The position numbers and the translations under genes are program-made. The notes under the pieces were generated by a model. That model was not told where the DNA came from. It worked only from the letters and a program-made list of their open reading frames with translations, and ran no database searches. Below, piece by piece: positions 24,297-45,665 of a stretch of DNA of 64,000 nucleotides; the first letter of the stretch is position 1, and the number at the start of each line of letters is the position of its first letter. The DNA is from Anthoceros angustus. Taxonomy: Eukaryota > Plantae > Anthocerotophyta. The stretch lies in NCBI GenBank assembly GCA_010909165.1, contig MU008155.1, forward strand, positions 1,612,001 to 1,676,000, given 5' to 3'.

Positions 24297-27200
24297 ATGG
24301 CCTCGCAGCGCCTGAACCCAGCAGCCGCGACCTTGGCAGGCTCGCCGCATTTTGCTTCTCGTTTCTCCTCCTCCAGTGAACTGGCTCAACAAGCTGCGAG
24401 GGCAGCAGCTCACTTCCCCGTCTTGAGACGCTCCTTACGTCAGCGGGCTGCTACATCCCCGGTAGGAGTGCAGGGCCAGCATCATGCCAGACAATTCCCA
24501 TGGCTTCTTGGAGGCAATTGTGGCTCGGATCGCTTCCGGGTCGGCCATACTTTCCAGAGGCAGCCTCTGGATGTCTCTGTCAAGGCTTCATCGGTGGAGC
24601 GGGAGGATGGCAGCAATGACATCGGTCGTGATCAGGTGAGAATCAGTGTGTGATGCCCTCTGCTGCCATATCTTCAATTTCCCCCCTCGGGAGCAGCCAA
24701 TGTGTGGCCTTTTTGTGTGGATAGGATGATTAAGACATGTGCTGTCGCTGAATTATGCACACCAAATTGGCTACCAGCTGAATGGACGTTGTCCCCTCCA
24801 CTCTTTGCTTCGGAGTGGGTATGTAGTGGAGCCGCGTGTAGGCTGCAATGGATGGTGAAAAATGGGAGAAGTGCGTGACTTGCCCGCTCTCTGTACAAAG
24901 TGGTCACTGGTGTCTGCCGTCGAACGAAGAGCTGACCACCAAGTGTGTACATGTTTTGATTCACAGGAGATGGAGTCTGCCGAGGGAACCTGTGATCCCT
25001 TATGTTCTGTGGATGAGATGAGTTCACTGCAATTTGAGGCCAACTATAAACCAAAGACTGATTTCCTAAAAGCCATTGCTATTGGTGTGGGAATTCTTGG
25101 AGGAGCAGCTATCATAAATCACTCGTGGGTTGCCGAGAACCAGGTATAATGTGGCTTTGAGTTGTATTGGACTGGACAAAGTTCTAAGGCTAGCTGATTT
25201 TGAAGGATGTCCTGCCTCATGAAATGGTCTTACCTTGCTCACTTACTTACTTTGTGCACCACAGAACCTGGCAATGGCCATAGTATTCTGCGCTGGATAT
25301 GCTGGGATCATTTTTGAGGAGTCATTGGTATTCAACAAAAGTGGGGTGGGACTGCTCATGGCAGTGACGCTTTGGGTTATCCGAAGCCTTGGGGTAAGCC
25401 ACTTCAGTTATCTATTGTGTGATACTATCGGGATTCATGGGTGAACATGGGTATGGAGAGCTATGCATGCTGATACTGTCATTTGTAACTGATCCATAGC
25501 AGTGGCTTACAGGCTTCATCACCTGAAGAAGCAGTACAGCAGTTGTCTGATTCGTCAGAGGAAGTCAGTGAGATTGTGTTTTTTCTGTTGGGTGCAATGA
25601 CAATTGTGGAGATCGTTGATGCACATCAAGGTTTCAAGTTGGTGACCGATGCCATCACAACGCGAAAACCTCGTATGCTGCTTTGGGTGGTAGGGTGCGC
25701 TTCTCTCCTCTTCCTTTATATTTGAGGATGGCTGTGTCCACGTGGACATGCTTTACACGCCCGTGACAAGTTCCCTTCCAAGTTCCATCATCTATTGTCG
25801 AATCTGACGTTTCTTGCCTGAAATTTCTGCATGCGTGTGATGCTCGTGCTCTTGTCTGATTGTGCAGGTGGGTGGAATAACATTCTTCCTTAGTTCTGTC
25901 TTGGATAATCTCACATCAACTATTGTTATGGTTTCTCTGCTTCGAAAGCTTGTCCCCAATCCAGAGCGCAGAAAGTATGTGGCCCTCATGCAGTTGTTCA
26001 TGACTTTTAGCATTAGTTTGTCATCCTGGAATGAGATCTATCGACGGAACTTTGGGACCTCACATGATGGGCATCGGATTTGCATGCAGATTTTTGGGTG
26101 CCGTCGTTGTCATTGCTGCAAATGCTGGCGGAGCTTGGACACCCATTGGGGATGTGACAACTACAATGCTTTGGATTCATGGGCAGATCTCAACTGTACA
26201 AACTATGCAGGTACTGGGTGTTGCATGGTTGTGGTCTGCCTTTGTACAACAATTTTGCCATCAGTTTCTTTGCTTTGCAACTCATCCAACGATTCCTTGC
26301 TGTTTGGTGTATTTCACAGGACCTTTTCATTCCTTCTGCACTCGCCTTGGTGGTGCCACTTGCTTTGATGTCTTTTACAAGGTATGAAACCTTGGCTGAC
26401 GTTGATTGCCAATGCCACAAGCGCGTCAAGTGTGAAACGTGCCGCTGGATTTTATGTTTGCTGTAGCCGCTGCCCGTATGCCGTGTCATCTTGCTTACAA
26501 AGTGTGATATTATGATGTATCTAGTGAAGTTGAAGGGAGTCAGGACGCACGCCCAGTGTTGTCAACAGAATCACTGGCACCAAGGGGGCAGCTGGTGTTT
26601 GCGGTGGGCGTAGCTGCGCTGCTGTTCGTCCCTGTATTCAAAGGTTTAACAGGGCTGCCACCGTATCTCGGCATGCTCCTGGGTCTTGGTGCACTCTGGC
26701 TCTTGACTGATGCAATCCACTATGGCGAATCTGACCGGCAGAAGTTGAAGGTTCCTCAAGCTCTCTCCAGGATCGATACCCAGGGTGTGCTGTTCTTCCT
26801 GGGTATACTGCTTTCTGTTGGCAGGTCAGTTGTGGCCCTCATGACCATGCTCTGGTGCTTGGTCTTGGTACCGGGCTTGCTACCAAGCATCTGACTTGGC
26901 TGTTGCTGCCTCACAGCTTGCAGTCTGCAGGACTTCTGACACAGTTGGCCAACTTCCTGGATGAGCATATACACAGCACGGAACTGATTGCTAGCTCCAT
27001 CGGCCTCGCATCAGCTGTTGTGGACAACGTGCCGCTGGTTGCTGCGACCATGGGAATGTACGACATGACCACTTTCCCACAGGACGCCGAACTTTGGCAG
27101 CTCATTGCCTATTGTGCAGGCACAGGGGGATCGATTCTAATAATCGGATCCGCTGCCGGAGTAGCATTCATGGGCATGGAGAAAGCTGATTTCTTTTGGT

Positions 27201-27421
27201 ACCTCCGAAAGGTAGGCCCTTGTTCCGTTAAGGGGTCTCTCTTCAAGAACCTTGATTTTTCGCTTTACATGTATCCTTACTTCCTACATACATGTCTACA
27301 GGTGAGTGGCTTCGCTCTAGCTGGGTATGTCGCGGGGATCGGAGCCTATCTGGCCATGCACCAACTCCAGGCCCCTGTCATGGGTTTCCTCAGTCACATC
27401 CCACTCATATCAGGCTCATAG
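24297..27421 (+). CDS. NHD1: Plastid NhaD-type Na+/H+ antiporter
   Basis: A transit-peptide-like exon is followed by EEVSEIVFFLLGAMTIVEIVDAHQGF, FFLSSVLDNLTSTIVMVSLLRKL, ANAGGAWTPIGDVTTTMLW, SAVVDNVPLVAATMGMY and GTGGSILIIGSAAGVAFMGME. Confidence 0.94.
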
Positions 27422-27945: not shown

Positions 27946-30587
27946 ATGGCCGCTGCTGCGATGACGGCGATGGGGGAGAAATCCATGAGGGGGATCCGGA
28001 TGGACGGCCTCCTGCTGCGGATCCTGTTCGTCACCCTGTGCTTCTTCGGCATCAATTTCCTCTCCACTTACGTGTCCGTGGCCCAGGTGACCTTGGCTGT
28101 GCCCGGGGGCGCCGCCTTCGACCTCTCCATTCCCAGTTTCTCGACGTCGTGGCACAGGATTTCCTCTGCTGCCGCTGCTGCTGGAGCTGCGGCTGGTGAT
28201 GGCGATGGTGATGGCGATGGTGATGGCGATGGTGATGGCCAGCATTCGGTTTCCTGGGGGGACCGGGGGTTGAGCAGGCAGACCTCCCTGCGGATGTACG
28301 TGCTCTCGACCGCGTTCACCAGCACGCAGCTGGTGGGAGTGTTCCGGAATCTGTGCTACAATGGAAGCCACGTCCTGACCATCGGCCCGAGCGTGGCCTG
28401 CGAGGAGGACGGTCTGGAGCCGACTCATGGTCTTCCGGCGTACTCGCCTCTCCGTCGCCAGGCTTGCAACGACTCCGAGCGGCTGGCAACGTACCAGGGG
28501 ATGCTCGCGAGAGAACGGCTTGCCGTTCGACGCCAGAGACGAGGACTGGTTTTTCAGCAGAAGCGGCAATATCACCTGGGAGACAGGGCTTTCCTCCTTC
28601 ATCTACCTGGACAGGTCCACCATAAACTGCGCGCACTTCCTCGGCAAGGTGAATGCCATCTTGCTCACGAACGGGCGACCATTCCCACATTCAGAGGTGT
28701 TGTGAGTCGGTTCTATTTCGTACTGCACCCTTGCGTAGAGAGCAGCAGTGGTGCCTGGGGCGCCGCCTTCGACCTCTCCATTCCCAGTTTCTCGACGTCG
28801 TGGCACAGGATTTCCTCTGCTGCCGCTGCTGCTGGAGCTGCGGCTGGTGATGGCGATGGTGATGGCGATGGTGATGGCGATGGTGATGGCGATGGTGATG
28901 GCCAGCATTCGGTTTCCTGGGGGGACCGGGGGTTGAGCAGGCAGACCTCCCTGCGGATGTACGTGCTCTCGACCGCGTTCACCAGCACGCAGCTGGTGGG
29001 AGTGTTCCGGAATCTGTGCTACAATGGAAGCCACGTCCTGACCATCGGCCCGAGCGTGGCCTGCGAGGAGGACGGTCTGGAGCCGACTCATGGTCTTCCG
29101 GCGTACTCGCCTCTCCGTCGCCAGGCTTGCAACGACTCCGAGCGGCTGGCAACGTACCAGGGGATGCTCGCGAGAGAGAACGGCTTGCCGTTCGACGCCA
29201 GAGACGAGGACTGGTTTTTCAGCAGAAGCGGCAATATCACCTGGGAGACAGGGCTTTCCTCCTTCATCTACCTGGACAGGTCCACCATAAACTGCGCGCA
29301 CTTCCTCGGCAAGGTGAATGCCATCTTGCTCACGAACGGGGCGACCATTCCCACATTCAGAGGTGTTGTGAGTCGGTTCTATTTCGTACTGCACCCCTTG
29401 CGTAGAGAGCAGCAGTGGGTGCCTGGGCGGGGCAATGACGACGGTTTCCTTCCCACGTACCTGGCGGGGGCTCTCAACAGAGTGCTCTCGCCGTTTTCTG
29501 ATGTGAAGGAGCTTCGCAGCTCAGACCTCCTGGCCAGCGCTGACGAGCTCGGAATTGTTGCAGCTCGAGGCAGAGTGCGTTTGGATAGCCAGCCCTTCAT
29601 GCAGGCTTCGGAGGACAGCCCCCTCTGCTTCGATCAGGCTCTTGTTCCAGGAGTCCTCAAGGTGACGCGTCAATGCGTCTCTAGCCCTAAAGAACCGATT
29701 TGGTGTTGTGGTCGTTGTGATTGACACGGCTTGCAAATAACATCTGTTGTTTGTTGTGCATGTTCTAGGAGGGGCTTTATCCTTCAGGCAAGCCGGTACC
29801 ACAGATCGTGAGACAGCACTTCAGGACATGGCTGGACATCCAGTTGGGGGAGAAGGAAGCCCCGGTGCTGGCCTACATCAGGAGAGACGGGCGGCGCAGG
29901 GTCTTCATCCAAGAATCCGAGCAGCTCTTTACGCAGCTTCTCCAGACCACGGAGGGCTTCGCATTCCGGAGCATCAGCTTCAGCAACATGAGCTTCCGCG
30001 AGCAGTTCAGGCTGGCGCAGGAGGCGGACGTGAGCATTTCGCTGCACGGCGCGAACCTGGTAAACCCGTCTATGCTGTCGCGGGGCGGCTCCATCCTCAT
30101 CGAGCTGCACCCGTTCCGCGCCCTCCACCGGATGTACGAGACGCAAGCTCTCCAGTCCGGGCTCATCTACTTCGGCCATCAGCTGGACCAGGCCACCCCG
30201 CAGAAGCTCGACAAGAAGTTCCATGGCCTCTCGTACCCGCAATGCATGGCCAAGGCTCCGGAGTGCAAGGAGAACTTCCTCCACCGCAGGAACGTGGAGC
30301 TCACCGAGGACGACTTGCTGCAGATCCAGACCGTGCTGGCCATCGCCCGCCGCATCTACTGGGAGCTCACCCTAAACGGCGTCACTGCAGACGCCAGCCC
30401 GCAGCTCTTCGCGCCTCGGTTGCTGCAGATTGTGCGGGAGGAGGCGGACATGGACACCAGCTGTGCACCCTACCTCACTGCCAAGGACGATCTGTGCCGC
30501 AACACATGGGTGGCCTTCTCGGACCAGCAAGGATCTCTGCATATTTGTTACATCAGCAAACGGTGCCAATTGCCTTGGACATCATAA
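27946..30587 (+). CDS. GT61 (DUF563)-like type II membrane glycosyltransferase, paralog 1, with internal tandem duplication
   Basis: Exons 27946-29661 and 29769-30587 (phase-0 intron after PGVLK). N-terminal TM segment LLLRILFVTLCFFGINFL; motifs NCAHFLGK and SFREQFRLAQEADVSISLHGANLVN. Confidence 0.7.
28100..29427 (+). repeat. Intragenic direct tandem duplication (~651 bp + ~668 bp)
   Basis: 28100-28750 is repeated at 28751-29418. Differences are only small indels and one extra 12-bp GGTGATGGCGAT unit. GTGCC(C/T)GGG microhomology lies at the junction. Confidence 0.95.
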
Positions 30588-30646
30588 CAACACGATATGA
30601 CCTACTGGTTTTATCGCCTTTGTATCATTTTCTGATATTTAGTGAA

Positions 30647-30680
30647 ACCGACGCGTCACCAAATTTGGTGACGCGTCGGT
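30647..30680. repeat. Perfect 34-bp palindrome
   Basis: ACCGACGCGTCACCAAATTTGGTGACGCGTCGGT equals its own reverse complement. Confidence 0.95.
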
Positions 30681-30757
30681 AGTGTTCTGCTCATAACATA
30701 TTTTGGAAGCACGGCCTTTTCGGGCCTTCGGGAACCCAACGACTATCCATAAACCCC

Positions 30758-30900
30758 AAAAACCCCTGAGTAGTGCTCTATCCACCACTCTCCCATTCCA
30801 AACCCCCAAGTACTGCTCTTTCTACCACTCTGCCATGCCAAGCCCCCAAGTACTGCTCTTTCTACCAATCTGCTATGCCAAACCCCCAAGTACTGCTCTT
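30758..30900. repeat. 40-bp tandem repeat, about 3.5 copies
   Basis: Unit CCAAACCCCCAAGTACTGCTCTTTCTACCACTCTGCCATG. Confidence 0.85.
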
Positions 30901-31269
30901 TTTTCATAAACAAAGCGATCATTACACTCAAGTTTTTTTTATAATTAAAATAACAATAACACTCACAAAGCCATGATAACACTCAAGTTTGTCTATAAAC
31001 AAAGCTATTATGAGACGCATACCATATAGTTACATACCTTGTCCCTGGCCGCGCTACAAGACACCGTTGTTCGTCACGCGAGCAGAAAAGGCCAAATTGT
31101 AGCGAGCTCAAAGGTCAGAATCCTGTCCGTAGCGAGCTCAAAGCGTGATTTGGATGAGCTGCGGAATTGGGTGCACGAGGGGCACGCAATCACGGAGCTC
31201 TATACATCGAAGCCACCATGGTGATAGAAATTTGTGTGTGGTAGATCTAGCATGGGAATTCGCACTCCA

Positions 31270-33592
31270 ATGGCGGGAGGGGAAGGCGCCGGGCCTCGCT
31301 CGGCTCCGGCTCCAGATCTGCACATCAAAATGAAGCGCAAGCAGGTCAAGGAGGCAGGGATTCGCCGGCTGGCGACGCTTGGGAGGCTCGGTGCACCGGG
31401 CGGGAAGAAGGTGCGGACCTTCGGGAAGGTCATGCTTGTCATATTTTGCTTCTTCTCCCTCGACTTCCTCTTCTCCTATTTCTCCGTCTCCTTGATGACC
31501 ACGCGGAGACAGGACGGCGCCTTAGTCGACGCCTTAGGCTACTCCTCCCTGCTGGACAGCACCACATTTCTAACGCGATCGCTGCACCAGAAGCGTGGAT
31601 TCGGAGCCGAATCCAAGCAGGTGCAAGCCACAGCGTCGGAGTCGGAGTCAGAGTCGGAGTCGGAGTTGGAGTCGGTGGAGAAGCCCGGGTTGAGCGATGC
31701 GGTCGGGGCCGGACCAAAGCAGGTGCAGGCCACAGAGGTGGAGTCCCAGTCCGGTGACTCGAAAGACGGAGATAGAAGTGCGGAATCGAAGCTGGTGCTG
31801 CCGATGGACGTCAGTGTGGTTGAGGCTGATCCGGTTGGCGGGAGCGGCGGTCGGAAGAGGCAGCAGGTGTCGACGGTGTCGGAGACGGAGGCCTTGGCGG
31901 ACCGCAAGGTGAGCCGGCAGACCAGGATGCGGTTTTACGAGTTGAAGGATATGCTCGGCATCAGCAAGCCGCAGGTACTGGCGCAGTACGAAAATCTGTG
32001 CTTCAATGGGAGCCACCTTGTGACAATCGGCGACAGCGTGATCTGCGAGCAGGACGCCGATCCCGATCCGACAGCCTTTCCTCACTGCGCACTCCGGCCC
32101 GAGCGATGCAACGACACGCGCAGGCTGGAGTTGTTGCAAGAGCTGCGGACGAGTGAGCACGGCCTGCCTTTCGGCGCCAGGGACGAGGCCTGGTTCTTCC
32201 GTAGAGCCGAAACACAGAGCTTAGTGTGGGAGCGGGGAACCACCTCCTTCATCTACCTGGACCGGTCCACAGCAAATTGCGCTCACTTCACCAGCAAGAT
32301 CAACATCCTCCTCCTCTTCAACCGGGCGGCTATGGACGTCCCTGCCTTCCAGAACGAGCCTGTCGACCGCCTCTACTTCGTGCTTCATCCGGAACGTCGT
32401 CTTGCCCAGTGGCAGCCGACGCGGTTCCTGGAGCGGGGCTTTCTGGCCTCGTACCTTCCGGTGGTGCTGAACAGAGTTCTCGCGCCTTTCAAGGTCGGCG
32501 AAATCCGAGCGCGCGATCTCCTGAGCCGTGAGCCGATCGTGGCGGGTGAAGGTAGGGTGAAGATGGACGGCTTCCCCTTCCTCGGCGCCTCGGAAGACAG
32601 GCCGCTCTGCTTCCAGCGGGCCGTGGTGCCGGGCATCCTCAAGGTGAGTTTTAGGTCAGGTCCCTTTCGACTACAACCTCACCCGTGAAGGTGTCGCTGT
32701 GATGATTGTGGCGCCCTCACGATCGGAATCCACCGCCATGCAGGACAGTCATTACCCGGGGCACACGAGATTCGTCCCCGACATGATGCGGGAGCACTTG
32801 GCGGAGTTGCTGCAGGTTGAAGCGGGCAAGGGCAAGTCGAATGGCAGCAGCGGCAGCCCGCCTGTGGTTGCGTACATCCGGCGGGAGGGGAGGCGTCGGG
32901 TGTTCGTCACGGCGTCGGAGCGGCAGCTTGGGGCGGTTCTGAGGGAGATGCAAGACGTGACGGTCCGCACGGTGAGCTTCAGCAAAATGAGCTTCCGGGA
33001 GCAGTTCACGCAGGCGCAGGAGGCGGATATCACCATCTCCCTGCACGGCGCCAACCTGGTGAACCCGACGATGTTCGGGCGCCGGAACTCTGTCGTCATC
33101 GAGATGCTGCCCTACCGCGTCATGCACCGGATGTACGAGACGCAGTCCATCCACTCCGGCCTCATCTACATGGGACACCAGCTGGAGCAGGCGACGCCGC
33201 AGGAGCGCGACGACGGCGAGTTCAGCGGCCTCACCTTCGCCCGCTGCATGTTCCACCCCGCGTGCAAGTACTACTTCGTGCACACGCGCAACGTGGAGCT
33301 CACGCCCGAGGACCTGCTCCACATCCAGTCCCTCCTGGCCACATCCCGCCGCCTCCACCTTGACCTCATCCGCAAGGGCGTCGCGCCGGATTCCTCCGCC
33401 CGCTTCGAGCACCACCTGGTTCAAATTCTCAAGGAGGAGACAGGCGTGCAGGTTGCGTGCGGCCCCTACCGGAATTTGAAGAACGACACTTGCCGCAACA
33501 CATGGGTCGGCTTCGCGGACAATCAAGGCCTCCCCAGGCTCTGTTACGTGGCTTCGCGCTGCATCTCTTCCAACTCCACCGCCACCAGCTGA
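31270..33592 (+). CDS. GT61-like glycosyltransferase, paralog 2
   Basis: Exons 31270 (or 31330)-32643 and 32744-33592; phase-0 intron after PGILK. TM segment VMLVIFCFFSLDFLFSYF; motifs NCAHFTSK and HGANLVN. Confidence 0.72.
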
Positions 33593-33868
33593 CACCAGAG
33601 CGTGCCTTCTCTCGCGCAGCGCGCGCTTGCAATTTTCTTTGCTTCCGATGCACCGCAGGGGTCTGCAAGCTCCAGCGCTGTCTTACGTCCGGGTCCTCCC
33701 TAAGCTCCAGGTCAGGATCCAACACCACATATCCAATTCCTTCATCAATCCGGCGCTGTGTGATTCGTTTCTGTCTTGAAAATTTCTCGACTTCATGCCG
33801 GCCGGCGTGCCGAGGACAAGTCTAACTGACAAAGGGAATGAGTGACTGACGCAATTCGTCGGGTTGCA

Positions 33869-34356
33869 GTGCGATGTGGCCTGGATTGTCGACGTATGTA
33901 CATAATCCGAAGGGGGCTAGGTTTTGGGCGCCCTTTGGTCGGAAAAGTTATTTTTTTAAAAGTGAAATCTTAACATGTATCCAAATAATTTTAAGGTTTT
34001 CAAAAAAAAAGTTTTCTTGAATTGGGTATTTTCCTTTCCACTTGACCAGTAGGAGAGGGAATGTGGCCACGTGCCACCACCCCAGGCGAGCGTTTGCCCT
34101 TTCGGCGGGGAAAGGAGACTTGATGAGTATGGTGGGGTAGCCGCCTCCATTCTGGTTAGCACCTCGCACTTTCTATTGGTTAATAACATGGTAACGGCAC
34201 CTACAAGTACTAGAAGAGATACTAAGGGTGAGAATGCTGTCACTAAAACAGACCACACAAATAAATGTAACAAGTGCGATGATGGCCTGGGTTGTCGGAC
34301 GTATTTCAAGATTTCAATTTTAAAAAAAGTGACTTTCCAACCAAAGGGCGCCCCAC
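33869..34356. repeat. Small non-autonomous element with ~55-bp imperfect inverted repeats
   Basis: GGGCGCCCTTTGGTCGGAAAAGTTATTTTTTTAAAAGTGAAATCTT at ~33925 pairs with the reverse complement at ~34305-34354. A ~30-bp direct repeat (GTGCGATG..TGGCCTGG.TTGTCG.ACGTAT) lies at ~33869 and ~34274. Confidence 0.55.
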
Positions 34357-35232
34357 CCTCATCTGTGTGCGCCCAGCTTCACAACTCCGGTTTGCAGCCT
34401 GAGATGTTAGTATTAGGCCCTCGTCGAGGCGCGCACCTACAGCTAAATTCATCTGCAGACAAGGACAAATCGCAAACCCAATGCATCTGTTGCACATGCA
34501 GTTTTGATAAAGCAAAACAAAAAACTGCCTGCACTGACCATTGCGTGTGTATGTCCATATAGAAACTGAAGATGTTCCTCACGAAGTCACAGGCCCTCGA
34601 GCTCCATTAACATCAGACTCCAGACTTGTGCTAGCCTTCCGTATGCTGCCCCCCATCCCAGTTTATCCTCCTAGGTCACCTCCAGATACTTGGCCAATGG
34701 AAAAACTCCATAGAGGTCCGATACGTGTTGATCCTTACCATCATCCAGATGTGAGAAATGACCAGAGACACTTTGAGGAGGACAGAGAAAAGATCCGGGG
34801 AGTGATCAGAAGAACAATTGCCTGCCTAGAGTAGGACATACAAGACCTACACTCACTGGATTCACAGTGGGAAGAGTGGATACTGCATGAAGCATCTTCA
34901 AAAGGTAAATATGCAAAAAGTGGCTTAAAAAATAACTAAAGAGAATCTGCACTAGTTTTTTTGAGTTTAGATCCTAACCCTTAGATCTATTACTTGTCAG
35001 TTCATGATAAGATTATACTGTATGCTTCATCCACTGAGCTAACCTGTACTTGTGCAGACAACTTAACAAGAAAAACTTTGCACTGATCATGGACGCCTTG
35101 AAACGTGTAAACAGACTTAGGTGGTGAAAACTAACGAGCTAAGGAGTTAGCAGCTAGTAAAACTCTAGACTAAAAAACTTGTGAAATTTTGTCAGAGGCC
35201 ATCTAGGTGGTCCAAGTAGTAAGGCTATTAAA

Positions 35233-36456
35233 TTAGAAATGGAACTCTCTAAGACCTGGAGATTCTAGGTGCTTAAAGTGCTTAATTTTAGGAAGAGCCT
35301 TAGTTAAAATATCAGCAATGTTATCTTTTGTGCTGATGTACTTAAGCTTTATTATTCCTCTCTTTGCAACATTCCGGATGTAATGGTGGTAGAGCTCTAT
35401 ATGTTTAGTCCTAGCATGGAACCTAGGGTTAGCAACTAAAGCTATAGCACCCATGTTGTCACAAAACAAATTAGTAGGATCAGTTTGTGACTGATTTACA
35501 GAATCAAGGAATTGATGCTCCCACTCTACCTACTTGCAGGCATCTGTCAGGGCTTTGTACTCGGCTTCAGTAAAAGACAAAGCAAGAGAAGCTTGTTTCT
35601 TGCAACTCCAACTAACGGATCCAAAGGCTGCAAGGAAACAATAAGCTGAAAGACTCTTTCTAGTGTCAGCATTTGAAGGTTAGTCAGTATCTGCAAAGGA
35701 GGTAAGTCGTAGTGACTTGCTCCCAATTGTTGAATACTGTAAACCATAGGAAATAGTGCCCTTTACATAGCGATAGATAAGCTTAACAGTTGTCCAGTAT
35801 GCTCATCCATGTTGCTTAAGGAACTGCGATACTATGCTAACGCTGTAGCTTATATCAAGTCGCATCCAGTTGGCCAGGAAAATCAAGCATCCGACAGCCT
35901 CTACATAAGGAACAGATGCTATATGCCATTTTATATTTGCTGCACTTTAAGGAGCTTGCTCAACACTAAGCTTTTCCCCCACTACAGAGGGTGTTGTAAC
36001 AGGTCTGGCCTCATCCATATGCAATCGTTTAAGAATTTCTTTGACGTACTTAGTTTGATGAAGGATAATTTGACCTGCAGTCCTGTGACGCATGATCTGG
36101 ATGCCTAGACAACAGTGTAGATCCCCTTTATCAGTCATTTCAAACTCAGCACGAAGCATAGTCTTAACCTTCTCTAATTGCGGAGTACTATTTCTGAGAA
36201 GGAAGCAATCATCCACATATAGTGCTAGGACAACAAAAAGGCCACCCTGTGAAAGGTAAAACACATTGCTATTTGCTGGGGATTGTAGAAAACCTAGCTT
36301 CTTCAAGTACTTCACAATCCGCTTATACCACGCTCTTGGACTTTGTTTCAAGCCGTAGATAGTCTTGAGCAGCTTGCAGACTTTCCTAGCCCATTTCTTG
36401 TTGATGAAGCCTTCTGATTGCTGCATGTATAAAACTTCTTCTAACTCCCCATGCAA
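35233..36456 (-). mobile_element. Ty1/Copia RT-RNase H fragment
   Basis: LHGELEEVLYMQQSEGF, YGLKQSPRAW, LYVDD and CDNMGAIALVANPRFHARTKHIE...DNIADILTKAL. The fragment is truncated abruptly at 36456. Confidence 0.92.
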
Positions 36457-36899
36457 CAGTGTTTCTCAGCATAGGGGTCTGTCTCCGAACCCCATTTTGG
36501 CCCCCACCATCCAGAAATGCACATGTCTCATTTCACTGTGTTCAGTGATTTGCGAATCCACAGCCCATGCATCCGAGCCCAAAAGAAAACCTAATGTGCC
36601 CACCGTCCCCACAAATGCCGGACACACCTTTGTATCAGGTGGCCGAATGACTGGCGCACTTATGCTCCAAAAAGCTGGAGTGCGCCGGACGTCTGGCGCA
36701 CTTATACTCCAAAGAGGTGTAGTGCACCGGGTTTGGAGAGAGTTGCGTCAATACTTGTGCAGGCAAACACTTTCATTCAAGTTGCCTGCGCACACTTGCC
36801 ACCGCACCAACACTCACATTAATTCTCTTTTCAAACCTCATGATTCAGAGCAATCCCAGACGCAGGCATACCCTGTCTGACCTGCCCCCTCCGTGTCGG

Positions 36900-37400
36900 A
36901 GATAAGCCGCACTTAGATCTGCAGCATTAGGAACAACATAAGGAACATCCGGGACATCATATTCTCGGTGGCCAAGGAGGGCGGCTTTTTTCCCTTTAAG
37001 GAGCATCCCTAAACCTTGCTCAATTGTGTGTCTCTCAAGGCTACTTTTCTCGACCGGGGGGTACTGTGGCTAATGTGGTTGTAACAGACCCCACCCAGCA
37101 TAGTGTCTGTGAGCAAGTTATCCTCAATCCCCCGGGTTGGGCAGTGAAAGGTTGTGCGACAGCCAAGGTCCACAACTACTCTCCTATGCATAACGGCCAC
37201 ACTTTTATCCCTCTCGCCATCCAGACTCACCACGATCGCAGGAATGGGATTGGTCTTCCCCTTTCTTGTATTGTATCTTTCTTCAGGCAACGGGTGTCTA
37301 TCGCCCTGCAGAGGGCATTGGTGAACGCGGTGTACTCGACAGTGACTAGTGCAGGGGAGGCGGCTTCTTCGGCGAACATGATAATTTTTGAAGGGGGGGA
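36900..37400 (+). mobile_element. Relic of an early-branched (CRE-like) non-LTR retrotransposon C-terminal REL endonuclease
   Basis: NIRDIIFSVAKEGGF, NVVVTDPT, FIPLAIQT and VSFFRQRVSIALQRA resemble REL-domain motifs. A deletion and a stop are present. Confidence 0.55.
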
Positions 37401-38269
37401 ATATATTAACCTCCTTCGGTCAAGACAGCACCCCCTTGTCACGATGTACACCCTTCCTGTAACAGCATATCTGCCCTACTTTGATAATGCGCACACCCTT
37501 TCTGAGGTCATACCTTTGATAAAAGACGCACTTTCATGTCTACACCCGAGAACTGGAGCACAGTAGGGTGTGGGCCCGTCTGCTTTTGTAGAATGCATAG
37601 AGGGCTGCCATTTTCATATGTTTATTACAACCGAAAACTTTTACTTTCAAGTGGTGGAACACAATGAAAACAATCCTGTACTAGCAGGAGTCTCATTTCA
37701 ATGTCGTGAGAACATTGCAACAAACAATTGCTAAAGGAGAAAGTGGTCATCAGCATCGACAATAGTCATTCAAGAGTGCGGCCTAGTGACTCATCCATGC
37801 CTTGCACCGAAACTGAGTCAAGTACCACCGCCATATTCCGGAGGCGGTCCATATCCTCCGCTTCAAAGATGTCGTTCTCCTCCATTGCTTGCTCGTCTTC
37901 AATAGTACCATTTTTGGGCCCAACGTCCGACGGTGTCGACTGCCACACAACATCTAGCGTCTGCTAACCCTCATCCAAAAGTCGCTAGTCGTGGTCTTCA
38001 ACTTTCTGGCACTCAATGCAACCACTTGGGCTTTAAGGCAATGCCAACGTCCTTAAAATGAACAAAGTTAGTTGCCCATGCGCCCATGCAAGCATCCTTA
38101 AAATCAACAAAGTTGAGTTGTTCAGGAAATACGGGTTTTGAACACTTGAACACGAAACCTATTCATTACTACACTTTTTCCCCAAACACTTAACCAACGG
38201 TCCCAAGTTCCAAAGCTCATGAGCTGCTAAATATCTATTTTCTTAAAGACAGCCTATGAGGAGCCAATG

Positions 38270-38555
38270 GGGGCGCCGGCCGGCGCCCATGGGCGGTGTG
38301 CCTAGGGAGGCGCCGGCCGGCGCCCATGGGCATGGCAAGGCGTGTTGGCGGGATGGGCGGCCGGCCCATGGGCGGTGTGCTAGGGAGGGCGCCGGCCGCC
38401 CATGGGCACGCCCATGGGCGGTGTGCTAGGGAGGGCGCCGGCCGGCGCCCATGGCAAGGCACGACATGTTGGAGGGCGCGCTGACCGGCTGGCGCCCATG
38501 GGTAGGGCAGGGTGTGCTTAGGGAGGGCGCTGGCCGGCCGGCGCCCATGAGCAGT
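38270..38555. repeat. GC-rich tandem palindromic repeat cluster
   Basis: Repeated GGGAGGGCGCCGGCCGGCGCCCATGGGCGGTGTG variants. Confidence 0.85.
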
Positions 38556-40540
38556 GGCATCTTTGGGGATCGCCTCCTTAGCACCATCCTACGGTGCATG
38601 CGGGTGAAGCTAGGGGGGGGACAAGAAGGGAACAACAGGTATCCTATCAGCGATGGAAGGTGTGGCCCATTTGCAGGAAGGGTTAAAAGATTACAACATC
38701 CTTGGAAGTGGTTTTCACGAGCAGAAGTGGATCATACGGCCTGACCAGTTCAAGTGTTGGATGAAGCTTTGCTAGATGAGGCATTATTGAGGGACCTCCC
38801 ACAGCGTGATATGTACTTGGGGGCAGATCAAAATGCTGGAAGGCAACAGTGAGAATGGCGCGGATGAATGGGGACATAATGGAAATCTTGAAGGGGATGT
38901 TTCTGGCAGTGTTGTGCACTATGGACATGCATAACAGGCCATTCTGGATTAGGGAGAGTCATTGACGCGAAGCTAGATGCACCACGACCTCACTTTCTTA
39001 TCCACTGGTATCGGACTGAGCACACATATGCGTACGAAGGGAGATATGTGTAGGAATACATAGTCCGTCAGAGTGCTAACCCATCTGGTCTGATGCCGAG
39101 GAAAAAAGGGAATAAGGTCCATTACCCAAAAAACATACAGGAGGTGTTTGTGAATAAAATAGCCATCCTGTATTATGGGTTTGTGTTGAACGCACGGAAA
39201 CATGTGTATGTGTTGGACAAAAAAGTGATAAGGGATGAGCTTTGCGAGTTGCGCGGCTTCATACAGCCTGCGAGTCAAAGTGCCGCTGAAGATAGTGATG
39301 ACAATGCTGGAGAAGCTGGACCAAGTGATGACGAAGGATTGAACTCTGGTGATGAGTGAAACTGAAATCACGGTTTGTCCCGGGGTCCCAGAGTGAATGT
39401 TGAACGTCTAGTTCCAAATGTTACTGTGTTTTGGAAATACCCTGTCTATGGCTTTTGTTGTGTCCTTACTAAACCACATTTTCCTCCCAAAATTGAATTT
39501 ACGGTCGTCCCTTCCCGGCAAGAACGGCCTTCCTTACCGTTCCTACTTTGCATTAATCCCATAGGTTCGAGTTTGCAACCACCATTCGACAGAAACATTG
39601 TTGGATGGAAAGTAGGAACTTTAGTGGATGACACCCTTTTTTTCGGAGATGTTTTCCGGAATGCCTTAAAAACGCTGTTTTAAGGCCCATCAAAAACCTG
39701 TTTCAGAGATTATTTACGGAAAACCCCCTTCGAAATTATTCACCCCCTTCAAAAATTATGATGTTTAGGCCCCGCGGGTGAGAATTGGACAAGGTAAAGG
39801 ATGGTGAGGCCTCCTCAACCCTTCTTGATCAAACTCTTCAAAGCTCACATTTCTTCTTGTCAAGTCCGTACCACTTTCAACCTTAATCTACCCATGGGTG
39901 GCACATGGAGCAAGTCAAATCTTAAATTCAAAATCTCCTGGCGAAGCTTGGCTATAGTTCGTCTCTGAACACCTAGCTGCGCCACAGCTGTAGTGGGCGT
40001 CACAGTGGGTATAGACAGGACCTCCTTCAGAGCCTCACTGAAATACTCAGCCATTTGGTCAAAATCCCCAACTAGGGCGATCAGCCCTCTTTCTTCAGAT
40101 ACTCGCTGGCTCTCACTAGAGCTTGTAGTGGCCAGGCAGATGCTCTCTTATACTAGTGTTTGACTGCATCCGACAAGCTTTCATTACTCAAGGACAAATC
40201 ATCTATTCTATTTATTTTCTTGCTTCTCTACAAAACATTGTGAAACATTGCCGTCATTTTCCAAAATTCTACATGTCGAATTTTGGAAAATGTAGCTCAT
40301 CTAGAAACCAAGGCCCATGCATCTATACGTGCATCAAACTCGAATGAGCCGGACATTTGACGCACCAATCAAAAAGATCCAACTGCAAGTCATCGGTAGG
40401 GGCACATAGAGTAAGGCCGAAAAGGTTTTACATGTTGTATACAAAGGGAATGCGGGAACATAACATCAGCCAATAAATGATTTTCAAAAATAATATTCAT
40501 GACTTTACGCCTAGATACCGGGATGATTTACAAATTTTTT

Positions 40541-40757
40541 AAACCACTAAAAATCAACACTCCATCCTGGTACTGATCTGCCTCTAGGTTGCTTAACAGT
40601 GGATTTGTTACAAAGTTTTCAAAGCGCCAAAAACAACCAAACCATCCTAGTACTAATCCGACCCAAGAGTGCTTAACCCTGGAGTTCTCAAAGCACTAAA
40701 AACAAGCACCCCATCCTCGTATTGATCGAACCCAGGGGTGCTTAACCTTGGAGTTCC
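40541..40757 (-). pseudogene. Three tandem 5S rRNA-derived (internal control region) fragments
   Basis: The reverse complement of unit 2, AGAACTCCAGGGTTAAGCACTCTTGGGTCGGATTAGTACTAGGATGG, aligns to plant 5S AGAACTCCGCAGTTAAGCGTGCTTGGGCGAGAGTAGTACTAGGATGG. Each ~70-80-bp unit is followed by a T run. Confidence 0.7.
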
Positions 40758-41974
40758 AATGTCATTCTTCTATCTATGTACACCTTTCCCAAGCGGATGC
40801 CATTGAGAGATACAAATAATATATATACATTTGTGCCGGATGTCCGGCGCATCCACTCTACCATTTCCATCGCGCTGGACGCCCGCAAGATTGGTGTCTC
40901 CAGAAAAGGCGCCGGACGTTCGGCGCAGGCTTTAGCAGACTCGTGCCAATGTGCCGAACGTTCGGCGCATTGCTCCAATTCCTTCCTATGTTTTTCACTC
41001 TAACAATGGAGATCCCAGGGTTGTGTACTCACCGTGCACCAGACATCTAGCCCTACTTTCTAGAGTCACTGAAACACTGTTTTATTAGCAAATTTTCTAT
41101 AGATTGAAGGCAGGAATTCAGAAGCTGTTCAGCTATATGGTCAACAATTTCTAGATTCTGGTCTTCTGTGTACGATTTTAAACTCTTGAACGACGAATGC
41201 AATGACGCGGACGGGGAAAGTCACCACAATAATTCTTCACATCTGATTTGTGCGCCTGTGATCTCTTAGGGTATCTGGAATTTGGAACTTGCTCAAGTGT
41301 CCGGTTCCTATGGAATTTGTTGTCTAATTCTACCTGGTATCATGACCAAACTTGGAACATAAGAGATATTCTTGCTTGATGCTATACATCAGTTGCTCGA
41401 TCAAACCCCCCTGCTCTCGAATTCCTTGTGCCTTGTGGAACTTTGTGATCTGAAGTGCGAAGGCGTACATATCTACTAGCTTTGTTCTGGAGGCCGGTAA
41501 TGTTGATAGCGCGCTCGTCGGTATGCTGGAAGAGATTCACTCTTGGCAGTGGATCAGGAGAAGAGCAAGATTGATGTTGTCTGCAATGTCTTCGACAATC
41601 GTCACAAAGTAATTCACCGCGTGGTGCATGCTGAAGAAGTAGGCGTGCAAGATTGACTAGAATCATCCTTCTCGGCATGGGTCTAGATGGGTTGATCAAT
41701 CTCGTCCTATGATCATTGCCGTGTAGATACATGGATCGGGCTCTGGTACCAAAACGTGGGGTCGGATTAACGTGGTGGTAAATCGAGCATTGCGAGGTGG
41801 GGGAACGAGGGAAGGCGTGCACACGCAAGAAAGCGAGAGGAATGATAACTAAATAATTATCAATAAATAAATTAGACTATATGTATAGGCGTAAAGCAGG
41901 TTAGGATTTGGTAACTACTAATTAGGTATCTATAGATAAAACACCCTTTCCATTATGCATTCCCATCCTAACCT

Positions 41975-42055
41975 AGCCACAATCATAGCCGCATTCCCGT
42001 CATTTGCAGCCACAGCCGCATTCCCGTCATCTACAGCCACAGCCGCATTCCCACT
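41975..42055. repeat. 27-bp tandem repeat x3
   Basis: AGCCACAGCCGCATTCCCGTCAT... units. Confidence 0.8.
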
Positions 42056-42211
42056 ACGGCACGATGGCGTCTGCATGCATCGGCATTCCCACTTCGGCAC
42101 AATTTCACGTGTGCTACCTCCGACGTCTCGACTAACCGCTACTGTTGGGCACTCCCCTTGGTATTTTCTTCCAATTAGGAAGTGGACAACCAAAAATAAT
42201 TTAATAACCAT

Positions 42212-42790
42212 AGAAGAAGAAGAAGAATTTTATTTAAGTCCACTAAGAACGGATTTCCATCATGGGACTGAAATATGATAACTACATAGATTGCGGTAAA
42301 CTGGTCTGGACGAATGTAAAGGTAAAATTCAAACAAGACAAATAATCAATCAATCAACAATGTCAATGAAATTGCGTGAACGAGGGCCAAAGACCACCAA
42401 TTCATCCCCACAAAAAAAAGCCACTTGACCTATAGCGCGAGCTGCTCTAAAAGCGAGTAACTTCTCTTTCTTAGTCTTCCATTGCAATGGTGTAAGATCC
42501 TCATTGATATATAACTGAGTTGTCCGTAAAATAGACCTAGCCTTCATAACCTGGAGGCGATCATCCATAGAGTGAAAAGTCATAATCAATATGCGCTCCC
42601 TACTGGGATCCTTTCCAAGCCAGAAGGCTGGAGGAACGACCACATGGATCTCTAGCCTATTCATAAACTCTTTTGCAGCCACAAGTGGTGCAACAATATC
42701 ATTACCAAGACTAAAAATTCTCAAAGTACGGCGAACACGGTCAGCCATCTCGGAACCAACTTCCGATACTGTATTGCCATCAGGACAAGA
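42212..42790 (-). mobile_element. LINE ORF1-like reading frame directly followed by a 3' tail (AATAAA + (CTT)n)
   Basis: RILIMTFHSMDDRLQVMKARSILRTTQLYINEDLTPLQ resembles the RRM/CTD of LINE ORF1p. The tail at 42269-42212 lies ~80 bp after the stop, with no ORF2. Confidence 0.6.
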
Positions 42791-43722
42791 AGGAGCAAGG
42801 GGATCATTAATCCCCAGGAGGTTATAGCCCCATGCGGTACTTGATGTATAGAAGCGCGAGTGCGAATATTATAATATCCTATATTTTATTTTCACTCGCA
42901 AAATTGGAGCTGCTCTCGCAGTACAAAAGAGAACACACTGGTGATATATATAGACGAGGTACATCTGTAGTGAGAGCGCGCCGAAAGTGGTGTGCTAGGA
43001 GTCTGCACGTTAGTAAAGCAGTTGTCTCTTGTGCCAGTTTAGCCACCCTCGTCGCTCATCCGAATGCCTGGATGTACAAATGTGAGGTGCTTTTGGTATA
43101 GCAACACCGCTAATTGTGCGAAGTTTTGCCACTAGAGTGAGGAGTGGCATCAGGTGAGCAACGCACAACGCATTTCACGTCACTTGAACGTGCTTTCCAT
43201 TTCGCGCAAATTGTGTAGAGGTCAGCGCCGAGTCTTTTGCAGTCGGTTGTAACCAACCAACCAACCAACCCGCTGCGCGTCGTGCGACTGCCTGATTTGT
43301 AGCCTAGCAGCACATCGTCGGGGCGGGTATATTAGATTACTTCCACCTCCTTAGGGAGAGTTTCACGACCGGTAGCACTACATGTTCCAAGAGGGACCCG
43401 GCACCAGGCACCAGGCACCAGGCGAAGGGCCGCATGAGTTCTGTTTTCGATGCTCTGCAATTGGCGCTTGTAAAGCTGCTTGCAGGCGTACAAGCGAGCT
43501 TATGGTTTGATGCACGATGCGCGGTGAGACTCCCCCGGCCCATTGCAGCACGCCGGGTGAGGCCGCACGCCGGCCGCGGGAGCTTCCAATTGGAGATGGG
43601 ACGACGGTGCAGCGCAGCCTGCAGCTGGCAACATCCGAGCTCGAGACAGCTTCCGGTTGTGGTTGAATTGCTTGGCCTGTGATTCCAGGAGGAGCAGGCT
43701 TGATCGAAAACGTAAGTCCAGG

Positions 43723-45665
43723 ATGACGATGGCGGCCCCGGAGAAGGTGCGCGGCAGCAGGCTGGACGTGCTGTTCGGCAAGGTTGCGCTGGTCACCATC
43801 TGCTTCTTCTGCCTCAACTTCCTCTTCAACTACTATTCTCTTGGCGGCCCCGCGCGGGAGAAGGGCACCTGGCTGGCGGCATGGATCAGGGACTCCTCCA
43901 CGCTCACATCGCTGCAGCAGCTGCTGGACGGGCCGGGGATGGACCTAATTCCGGGCGCGGAGCGGGATCGGTATCCGGAGGGGGAGGACGTGGACACCAG
44001 GCTGGAGCTCTACAACGTGGCCGACATCTTCAACAGCGGGCAGGTGCTGGCCAGGTTCCGCAACGTGTGCTACAACGGGAGCCACATCCTGACGCTGGGG
44101 GACAAGCTGGTGTGCGAGAACGCGCACGATGAGGCCCCGGCCGGGGGCTGGGGCCCGCTCATCCCGCAGCGCTGCAGCGACACGGGAGCGTGGAACAGGC
44201 ACCTGGCGGGGCTGCTCCGGGAGTACGTAATGCCCTTCGCCAGCCGGGACCGGGACTGGTTCGAGAGCAGGAGCAGGAAGGGGAGCCTGGCCTGGGAGCC
44301 GGCCACCTCGACCTTCATCTTCCTGGACAGGAGCACCGGCAATGTGGCGCACTTCCTAGGGAAGATGAACATGATCCTGCTCTTCAACGGCGCCTCCATC
44401 CCCGTGCCCGCGCTGGGGGATATGCTGGTGGAGAAATTCTTCTTCACGCTGCACCCGGCGCGGGAGGAGCAGTGGGCCAACACAAGCCGCAACCAGCAGG
44501 GGTTTCTCGCAACCTACATGGCGGGGACTCTGAACCGCGTCCTGGCCCCCTTCCAGATCCCGGAGCTCCGCGGCCCGGACCTGGTCGCGGGGGACGGCCA
44601 CCGCATCGTGGCTGCCCAGGGCAGGGCAACGTTCGGCGGCGTCCCCTTCATGGACGCGTCCGAGGACCGCCCGCTGTGCTTCCAGCAGGCCTTCCTGCCG
44701 GGGATCCTCAAGGTCGGTGACTAGGTTTCTCTTGCCGGAAGCTTGTTATGTTTTGCTGCGGTTTTTGGAAGCTCTGAAAGGAAATGTCGGTCATAGAAAA
44801 TTCATTCGTTTCTTGCTCGCTTGCTGTACCTGTACAGTTCACGCACTACGTGGGAATGGGTGGGGAAGTTGCGGACATCGTGCGGCAGCATTTCCGGGAC
44901 TGGCTCCACCTGGAGGCGGATGCACAGCAGCCCGGGTCGGGCCCGGCGGTGCTGCTGTACATCCGGAGGGAGGGCGCGAGGAGGATTTTCTTCCCTGAAT
45001 CCGAGCAGAGGCTGGCGCCGGTGCTGGAGGGCGTGGAGGGATTCACCGTGCGGAACATCAGCTACAGCAGGATGAGCTTCCGGGACCAGCTGAGGCAGAC
45101 GCAGGAGGCGGACGTGGTGATCTCGCTGCACGGGGCCAACCTGGTGAACCCGTCCATGCTGGCGCGGAGGAACAGCATCCTGATCGAGCTCGGGCCGTAC
45201 CGCGTGCTGCACCGGATGTACGAGACGCAGGCCATCCACTCCGGCATCATCTACATAGCGCACCACCTGGACCAGGGCACTCCGGAGGAGGCGGACGACG
45301 GCCGCTTCAAGGGGCTCGCCTACATCAGCTGCATGACCGTCCCCGCCTGCAAGGACCATTTCGTGCACCGCAGGAATGTGGAGCTCAATCAGGAGGACTT
45401 GACGCAGATCCAGTCCCTCCTTGCCGTTGCCAGGCGGATACATTTCGAGCTCACGCAAAAGGGTATCACCGTTAATGATCGGGCGACCACGGGGAAGTTC
45501 CGCGCAGGCTTGCTCCGCATTTTGAAGGAGGAGACGGGGGTGGACGTCTCATGCGGCCCCTACCGCAGCACCAAGAACGACGAGTGCCGCAGCACATGGT
45601 TGGCTTTTGCCGACGCCGAAGGAGCTCCCGTTCTTTGTTATCTCGCAATCCGATGCAGCTCCTGA
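43723..45665 (+). CDS. GT61-like glycosyltransferase, paralog 3
   Basis: Exons 43723-44712 and 44838-45665; phase-0 intron after PGILK. TM segment VALVTICFFCLNFLFNYY; motifs NVAHFLGK and HGANLVN. Confidence 0.72.

Follow-up and report, generated by a model that had tools for sequence, protein, structure and literature searches.

Three tandem genes of the hornwort Anthoceros angustus, probable GT61 glycosyltransferases of a streptophyte branch shared with Marchantia and the Zygnematophyceae

Glycosyltransferases of family GT61 shape xylan, mucilage and N-glycans in crops and model plants and, to our knowledge, all plant members tested to date come from seed-plant clades. The animal members POMGNT2 and EOGT are endoplasmic reticulum (ER) proteins, which transfer N-acetylglucosamine onto protein-linked mannose or EGF domains. 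Here, three genes of the hornwort Anthoceros angustus are described (G1, G2 and G3), which lie on the plus strand of a stretch of 64,000 nucleotides of contig MU008155.1 (GCA_010909165.1, positions 1,612,001 to 1,676,000), referred to below as the window. Sequence comparison and structure models make it likely that all three encode type II membrane glycosyltransferases of family GT61 which operate in the secretory pathway, most likely in the Golgi, and which belong to a streptophyte branch with no tested member. They share their CAZy family and a type II Golgi layout with the characterised plant enzymes, namely the XAT proteins of wheat, rice and sorghum, XAX1/XYXT, MUCI21/XYXT1 of Arabidopsis and the N-glycan enzyme XYLT. 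Surveys of GT61 have recorded ancient members that are unrelated to the xylan enzymes and leave this branch unnamed (PMC5902652; PMC6566377; PMC3342304); two of them also report that XAT and XAX lack charophyte orthologues (PMC5902652; PMC6566377).

All three genes have a two-exon layout, with the following features.

27946-29661, plus strand: G1 exon 1, with a membrane anchor (approximately residues 21-44), a stem of Gly/Asp repeats and the GT61 N-lobe; part of the exon is duplicated in tandem
29662-29768, plus strand: G1 intron, 107 nt, GT..AG, phase 0, with an in-frame stop at 29722-29724
29769-30587, plus strand: G1 exon 2, with the GT61 C-lobe, a four-Cys C-terminal tail and the stop codon; PF04577 match
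31270-32643, plus strand: G2 exon 1, with a cytosolic tail, an anchor (approximately residues 54-72), a long stem rich in Ser and Glu, and the N-lobe
32644-32743, plus strand: G2 intron, 100 nt, GTGAGT..GCAG, phase 0
32744-33592, plus strand: G2 exon 2, with the GT61 C-lobe, a four-Cys tail and the stop codon; PF04577 match
43723-44712, plus strand: G3 exon 1, with an anchor (model helix 14-39), a short disordered stem and the N-lobe with N207 and H210
44713-44837, plus strand: G3 intron, 125 nt, GTCGGT..ACAG, phase 0
44838-45665, plus strand: G3 exon 2, with the C-lobe carrying R44, R48, R49, H98 (HGANLVN) and Y128-E129 (MYE), a four-Cys tail at 232-275 and the stop codon

These models bear out an earlier note on this DNA, made from the sequence alone, which had placed three same-strand two-exon paralogs at 27946-30587, 31270-33592 and 43723-45665; the open reading frames (ORFs) and splice sites agree with both coordinates and strand. 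The note had also given each gene one phase-0 intron after PG(I/V)LK, and GT..AG borders were found at this point in all three. The GT lies immediately 3′ of the Lys codon of PG(I/V)LK, AG ends the intron and an in-frame stop occurs soon past each donor. In G1, the donor is AAG/GTGACG at 29661/29662 and the acceptor CTAG/G at 29768/29769 is the in-frame one. With G2, there is a second in-frame ATG at 31252, located 18 nt upstream of the ATG at 31270 that was taken previously. A tblastn search with the paralogs found no further copies elsewhere in the window. Every search, alignment and fold reported here was run on single exons and not on spliced proteins.

Each protein is predicted to start with a short tail in the cytosol and a single membrane helix, followed by a stem of low complexity and, in the lumen, a catalytic domain with the GT-B fold. 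The N-terminal transmembrane segment already proposed for each protein is supported by a Kyte-Doolittle mean of 2.0-2.2 over 19 residues. The stem is built of a Gly-Asp repeat in G1 and a Ser-Glu repeat in G2 and is short in G3. A luminal position of the catalytic domain is compatible with its conserved cysteines and with its NxS/T sequons, one of which is the NGS of CYNGSH. Of the motifs listed for the trio in the earlier note, N(L/V)C(Y/F)NGSH, DRSTxNxAHF, (R/S)PLCF, SFR(E/D)Q, QEAD, ISLHGANLVNP and HRMYETQ are present in all three proteins, the one correction being that G3 has TQEAD and not AQEAD.

Exon 2 of each gene possesses the Glyco_transf_61 domain (PF04577), with scores of 38.4 bits for G1 (E-value 1.8e-9), 37.7 bits for G2 (E-value 3e-9) and 31.8 bits for G3 (E-value 2e-7), all above the gathering cut-off of 27 bits. 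When Protein Data Bank (PDB) sequences were searched with a profile of the three exon-2 sequences, only POMGNT2 (6.5e-7) and EOGT (8.6e-4) were matched, and a 40-sequence family profile gave the same two proteins at 2.5e-16 and 1.4e-12 respectively. The three-sequence exon-1 profile had no match among PDB sequences, and the N-lobe is tied to POMGNT2 only via the 40-sequence family profile and the structure models. An NCBIfam search had no match.

For structure prediction with AlphaFold the two lobes were folded separately, with the lobe interface and the packing of the tail lying outside the models. Exon 2 of G3 was modelled from a 70-sequence alignment with a predicted local distance difference test (pLDDT) score of 93.6, and residues 1-213 of this model superpose on POMGNT2 254-476 with a Z score of 15.7 and a root-mean-square deviation of 3.1 Å, the next unrelated chain having a Z score of 9.2. 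The model of G3 exon 1 (pLDDT 82.1) has a helix at residues 14-39 and a disordered region at 41-80, while its residues 80-330 superpose on POMGNT2 52-239 (Z 9.9, with the next chain at Z 2.8). With Foldseek, the top 12 matches to the G3 exon models are all POMGNT2. Exon 1 comprises the anchor, stem and N-lobe, and exon 2 comprises the C-lobe; the intron therefore lies at the lobe boundary. The membership of GT61/DUF563 suggested in the earlier note is thus upheld by PF04577 matches above threshold, by POMGNT2 and EOGT as sole PDB sequence matches and by POMGNT2 as sole structural match; both the HMMER comparison with PF04577 and the structure prediction that it had proposed gave positive results, the former for exon 2 of all three genes and the latter for both lobes against a GT-B enzyme.

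Two other matches were rejected. A match of G1 exon 1 to TrAA12 (PF22807), at 30.0 bits below its cut-off of 30.9, falls in the Gly-Asp repeat and is a low-complexity match, and a resemblance of the C-terminal tail to the N-terminus of POMGNT2 had a domain E-value above 1e3 and was taken as chance.

Like POMGNT2 (PDB 7E9J, 7E9K, 6XFI, 8KB7) and EOGT (PDB 9WJK), the hornwort proteins have the Asn-Arg-Arg set, the proposed catalytic His, HGAxL and PY...Y, and with POMGNT2 they share the GT-B fold in both lobes; identity to the animal proteins is, however, only 12-20%. In GT61, the phosphates of uridine diphosphate (UDP) are bound by one Asn and two Arg residues, these being N163/R294/R298 in POMGNT2, N245/R372/R377 in EOGT and N394/R515/R519 in SbXAT, and the proposed base is a His three residues past the Asn, namely H166, H248 and H397 respectively (PMC13123520; bioRxiv 10.1101/2025.07.18.665579). 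Neither a DxD motif nor a metal is needed by active GT61 enzymes (PMC13123520; bioRxiv 10.1101/2025.07.18.665579). In G3, N207 and H210 are found in STGNVAHF of exon 1, H210 standing directly past the strand 190-201 of the model, and exon 2 has R44 and R48/R49 in YIRREGARRIF, the Arg pair being aligned by HMMER with SRTQNR of POMGNT2, as well as H98 of HGANLVN, which likewise has its counterpart among the UDP-binding residues of solved GT61 enzymes. These residues are invariant among the three paralogs, all of which have HGANLVN. They are also well conserved in the family alignment, where N207 is present in 35 of 40 sequences, H210 in 34 of 40, R44 and R49 each in 62 of 64 and H98 in 67 of 70; within HGAxLxN the counts out of 70 are H 67, G 68, A 65, L 65 and N 61.

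The likeness to the characterised plant enzymes extends to the N-x-x-H motif, the R-x-x-x-R UDP site and a long disordered stem, which covers residues 1-293 in SbXAT (bioRxiv 10.1101/2025.07.18.665579). In SbXAT, the residue past a conserved Tyr, at +31/+32 from the His of HGA, sets the donor, with Phe for UDP-Araf and Tyr for UDP-Xyl, the positions being F596 in SbXAT and Y462 in SbXXT (bioRxiv 10.1101/2025.07.18.665579). The xylan enzymes have this aromatic determinant, whereas the hornwort proteins have HGANLVN and MYE. The Tyr of MYE lies at +30 from H98 and is aligned with the Tyr of DHYT in POMGNT2, the next residue being a Glu (E129). Within a stretch that is conserved for the most part, the E129 column varies more than any other (E 16, Y 13, R 12 and V 6 of 70). 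It probably corresponds to the Phe/Tyr donor determinant of SbXAT and SbXXT, and its content hints that the donor may be neither UDP-Xyl nor UDP-Araf.

Neither G2 exon 1 (region 215-458) nor G2 exon 2 had a match in word-index searches of proteins; an exhaustive HMMER search with the exon-2 profile was therefore made against 1.84 billion proteins. This gave 462 matches at an E-value of 1e-3 or below, 77 at 1e-10 or below and 14 at 1e-30 or below. Many of the best exon-2 matches also match the exon-1 profile and are therefore full-length relatives. Names were looked up for 30 of the 150 listed matches. These look-ups and one word search gave four proteins of Mesotaenium endlicherianum and others from several Closterium strains, Netrium digitus and Spirogloea muscicola, together with Marchantia polymorpha Mp5g10510 (MARPO_0048s0021) and its orthologue in M. 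paleacea, the more distant ones being from the red algae Porphyra umbilicalis and Bangiopsis. The remaining look-ups led to sequence-archive or metagenome assemblies. No seed-plant or moss protein was present among the matches that were named, although such proteomes are present in the source databases. The view of the earlier note that the trio is unlike the characterised plant clades is consistent with these relatives, with the small number of matches among the 1.84 billion proteins and with PF04577 scores of only 32-38 bits.

A careful IQ-TREE phylogeny of the C-lobe was made from 44 rows and 230 columns, with red-algal-type sequences as outgroup and without the XAT, XAX, MUCI21 and XYLT references. 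It groups G1, G2, G3 and P0001 with P0011 (support 98/95), and the land-plant clade adds P0002 and the two Marchantia proteins (95/93). Its sister is a clade of 24 rows (92/90) in which every named member belongs to the Zygnematophyceae. The tree does not resolve P0001 and G1-G3 among themselves; P0001, which is 62-65% identical to these three, represents either a fourth paralog or the orthologue of a related species.

The Marchantia proteins, Mp5g10510 (P0153, annotated as 'hypothetical protein') and M. paleacea Mapa_012621 (P0156), are collinear with the hornwort proteins over both lobes, with E-values of 1e-26 to 1e-37 per exon and 28-34% identity. Like the hornwort trio, they fall in the land-plant clade and have the phase-0 intron after ...LK and a Cys-containing C-terminal tail. 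They differ in that a single 90%-identity cluster was found in M. polymorpha as against three tandem hornwort copies, in having TGTLK in place of PG(I/V)LK and in their long branch in the tree. When the M. polymorpha protein was used in a word search, the sole matches were its own cluster and M. paleacea. The hornwort exon junction aligns with residues 407/408 of this protein and with 314/315 of a transcript-derived Netrium protein. In Marchantia, the first of two genomic ORF calls (P0154/P0155) tracks the protein to residue 407 (...TGTLK) and then runs into VHF and a stop, while the second resumes at residue 420. This break places an intron at the same position in Marchantia, and the intron therefore dates back at least to the common ancestor of the two bryophyte lineages.

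The Zygnematophyceae proteins, namely Mesotaenium ME000150S01148, ME000276S04615 and ME000484S07931, Closterium CAI5531734, CAI5991012 and GJP50833, that of Netrium digitus and Spirogloea SM000293S10923, form the sister clade and match both lobes with E-values of 1e-15 to 1e-36 per exon. They share NxxH, R..RR, HGAxLxN, the C......CK pair and the four-Cys tail C..CR..C..C. In contrast to the HGANLVN of the hornwort, most of them have HGA(A/G)L(V/T/A)N; there are several copies per species, some have a signal-peptide-like N-terminus and none has been characterised. A literature search on the Marchantia, Mesotaenium and Spirogloea gene identifiers found no mention of them in the library of papers covered. 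The C-terminal tail of approximately 45 residues with its four cysteines (C...CR...C...C) is found in both the land-plant and Zygnematophyceae clades and is missing from the red-algal-type clade (alignment A3). It is modelled with high confidence, the C-terminal 60 residues forming two short helical and strand elements. A restriction of the Cys-rich tail to land plants was considered and ruled out, as alignment A3 has it in the Zygnematophyceae also.

The trio thus represents a streptophyte GT61 branch, marked by the four-Cys tail and found so far in Zygnematophyceae, Marchantia and this hornwort, in which a gene with one copy in Marchantia and several in Zygnematophyceae has expanded to three tandem copies in the hornwort. 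As a liverwort and the closest algal relatives share the branch, it is an ordinary uncharacterised enzyme family and no hornwort invention. The suggestion of a lineage-specific hornwort system consequently does not stand, given the Marchantia members of the same clade, their shared intron position and the Zygnematophyceae sister group. Nothing ties the genes to symbiont cavities either, as had been speculated, with Marchantia and free-living algae carrying the same family.

The three genes are tandem paralogs, real and under constraint. Pairwise identity is 51-56% in exon 2 and 46-53% in the conserved part of exon 1, and tblastn between copies gives E-values of 1e-65 to 1e-104, far past chance. 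The number of synonymous substitutions per site (dS) is approximately 0.8-1.4, which is close to saturation, and the ratio of nonsynonymous to synonymous substitution (dN/dS) is 0.30-0.46 in every pair and for both exons. The identities and dS values agree with the old expansion claimed previously.

G1 has an unusual feature which the earlier note did not report, in that its exon 1 holds a tandem duplication of approximately 0.65 kb (28103-29420), made up of two copies.

Approximately 28103-28753, plus strand: G1 copy A, frameshifted for about 57 codons with loss of DRSTxNxAHF, the frame being regained after
Approximately 28754-29420, plus strand: G1 copy B, intact and in frame, with NLCYNGSH and DRSTINCAHF present

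In a pairwise alignment the copies have zero substitutions and differ solely in the lengths of (GA)n, G and C runs and of a 12-nt Gly-Asp (GD) microsatellite. The frameshift of copy A arises from a 2-nt and then a 1-nt length difference, and the 592-codon ORF of G1 stays open because the frame is regained past the shifted stretch; the rest of the catalytic domain continues in frame from copy B. As only run lengths differ, the duplication is either very recent, with slippage, or an artefact of long-read assembly or consensus. If real, it would lengthen the stem and keep the catalytic domain.

This duplication, with its two frame-shifting length differences, and the interruption of the array by a 10-kb spacer, which is low in GC and holds a retrotransposon fragment, are what could be expected if one or more of the copies were unexpressed pseudogenes from a decaying tandem array. 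Such an origin is nevertheless unlikely. All six exons are open with intact splice sites, the catalytic residues are invariant and the dN/dS values given above indicate constraint in every pair, while in G1 itself the frame is regained, a full catalytic domain follows the duplication and the differences between its copies are of the kind made by long-read length errors.

It could also be proposed that the proteins are ER protein O-glycosyltransferases, like animal EOGT and POMGNT2, rather than Golgi decorators of polysaccharides. These two are the sole PDB sequence and structure matches, and the branch, at 32-38 bits, is remote from a Pfam seed of mostly plant wall enzymes. However, the PDB copy used contains no GT61 structures other than those of POMGNT2 and EOGT, and the match therefore shows the family and not the acceptor. 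POMGNT2 has a C-terminal fibronectin type III (FnIII) domain and EOGT has HDEL, and the hornwort proteins are without both, having instead a type II anchor, a stem and the four-Cys tail. The match of G3 to POMGNT2 stops at chain residue 476, ahead of the FnIII domain, and a Cys module of 45 residues forms the tail. The C-termini (...WTS, ...ATS and ...CSS) lack a HDEL/KDEL-type signal in all three proteins, and an N-terminal anchor with a long disordered stem is the usual layout of Golgi type II enzymes. An ER role of this kind is accordingly considered quite improbable.

That the genes are simply diverged orthologues of a characterised land-plant GT61, either the N-glycan beta-1,2-xylosyltransferase or XAT/XYXT/MUCI21, with the same job, is very improbable despite the common family, UDP-binding residues and type II topology, since the closest named relatives are from Zygnematophyceae, Marchantia and red algae with no NCBI-annotated seed-plant or moss protein among the looked-up best matches, the PF04577 scores are weak, word searches with both exons were blank, and ancient GT61 members are reported not to be close to the xylan ones, and XAT and XAX to have no charophyte orthologues (PMC5902652; PMC6566377).

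Some points do weigh against reading the trio as Golgi-type GT61 enzymes of a separate streptophyte branch. The equation of N207/H210 with N163/H166 of POMGNT2 is drawn from the NxxH motif, conservation and the aligned range, and not from a residue-level superposition. Likewise, MYE is mapped onto SbXAT by spacing from the His of HGA only, at +30/+31 as against +31/+32. G1 as assembled, with its duplicated and partly frameshifted segment, could be a misassembly or lack function. That seed plants are without the branch is an apparent absence, as 30 names were looked up among 150 listed matches.

If the proteins are Golgi GT61 enzymes as preferred here, transfer would be inverting and metal-independent, as in other GT61 members, with a sugar passed from a UDP-sugar to a luminal acceptor, which might be a glycoprotein or else a polysaccharide of the wall or mucilage. 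The xylan enzymes use UDP-Xyl or UDP-Araf, and the donor of the hornwort proteins may be a different one. A role in the glycans of mucilage or arabinogalactan-proteins is possible, though speculative, because all three lineages make copious mucilage. One could go further, but only tentatively and with more doubt than belief, and propose that the branch was perhaps lost in mosses and vascular plants and makes a linkage which seed plants no longer make, maybe from a donor that is neither UDP-Xyl nor UDP-Araf; in that case the three hornwort copies would reflect a diversification of this glycan specific to their lineage. Such a linkage might, for example, decorate the mucilage that these lineages make in abundance, or their unusual arabinogalactan-proteins.

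The cluster marks a GT61 branch whose history reaches back to the algae that are sister to land plants, and which survives in at least two bryophyte lineages. If the function of one member were known, a glycan linkage could be given for the branch as a whole, and the single Marchantia copy Mp5g10510 is genetically tractable. Such an assignment would add data on the changes that the toolkit for wall and mucilage underwent when plants moved onto land. The result is a useful annotation and the genes are reasonable candidates for study, with no surprise in kind.

G2 and G3 are separated by a spacer of 10 kb with a GC content of 43-50%, compared to approximately 60% in the genes. This had been described as transposable-element debris which later separated G3, and one remnant of this type was indeed identified.

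35947-36453, minus strand: copia-type reverse-transcriptase fragment (PF07727 RVT_2, E-value 3.4e-36)

It is the single verifiable remnant, as no long terminal repeat pair or inverted repeats were found in the spacer (33600-43720) and a Pfam search of eight spacer ORFs had no match beyond it. The word 'later' is unsupported, since the tree does not resolve the three paralogs and so gives no order of events. Also in the spacer is an ORF of 131 codons (42350-42745, minus strand), which has no Pfam match and whose composition suggests a degenerate transposon ORF.

Approximately 500 bp upstream of G1 there is an ORF at 26855-27418 on the plus strand with a weak CitMHS/NhaD-like match (PF03600, E-value 1.4e-4, below cut-off), which probably represents the final exon of an adjacent ion-transporter gene. 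Two further domains were identified in the window.

12406-13503, minus strand: COBRA-family C-terminal domain (PF25079, E-value 1.3e-21)
5537-6517, plus strand: condensin II non-SMC subunit domain (PF12422, E-value 1.3e-43)

Both belong to ordinary plant genes and support a land-plant origin of the window.

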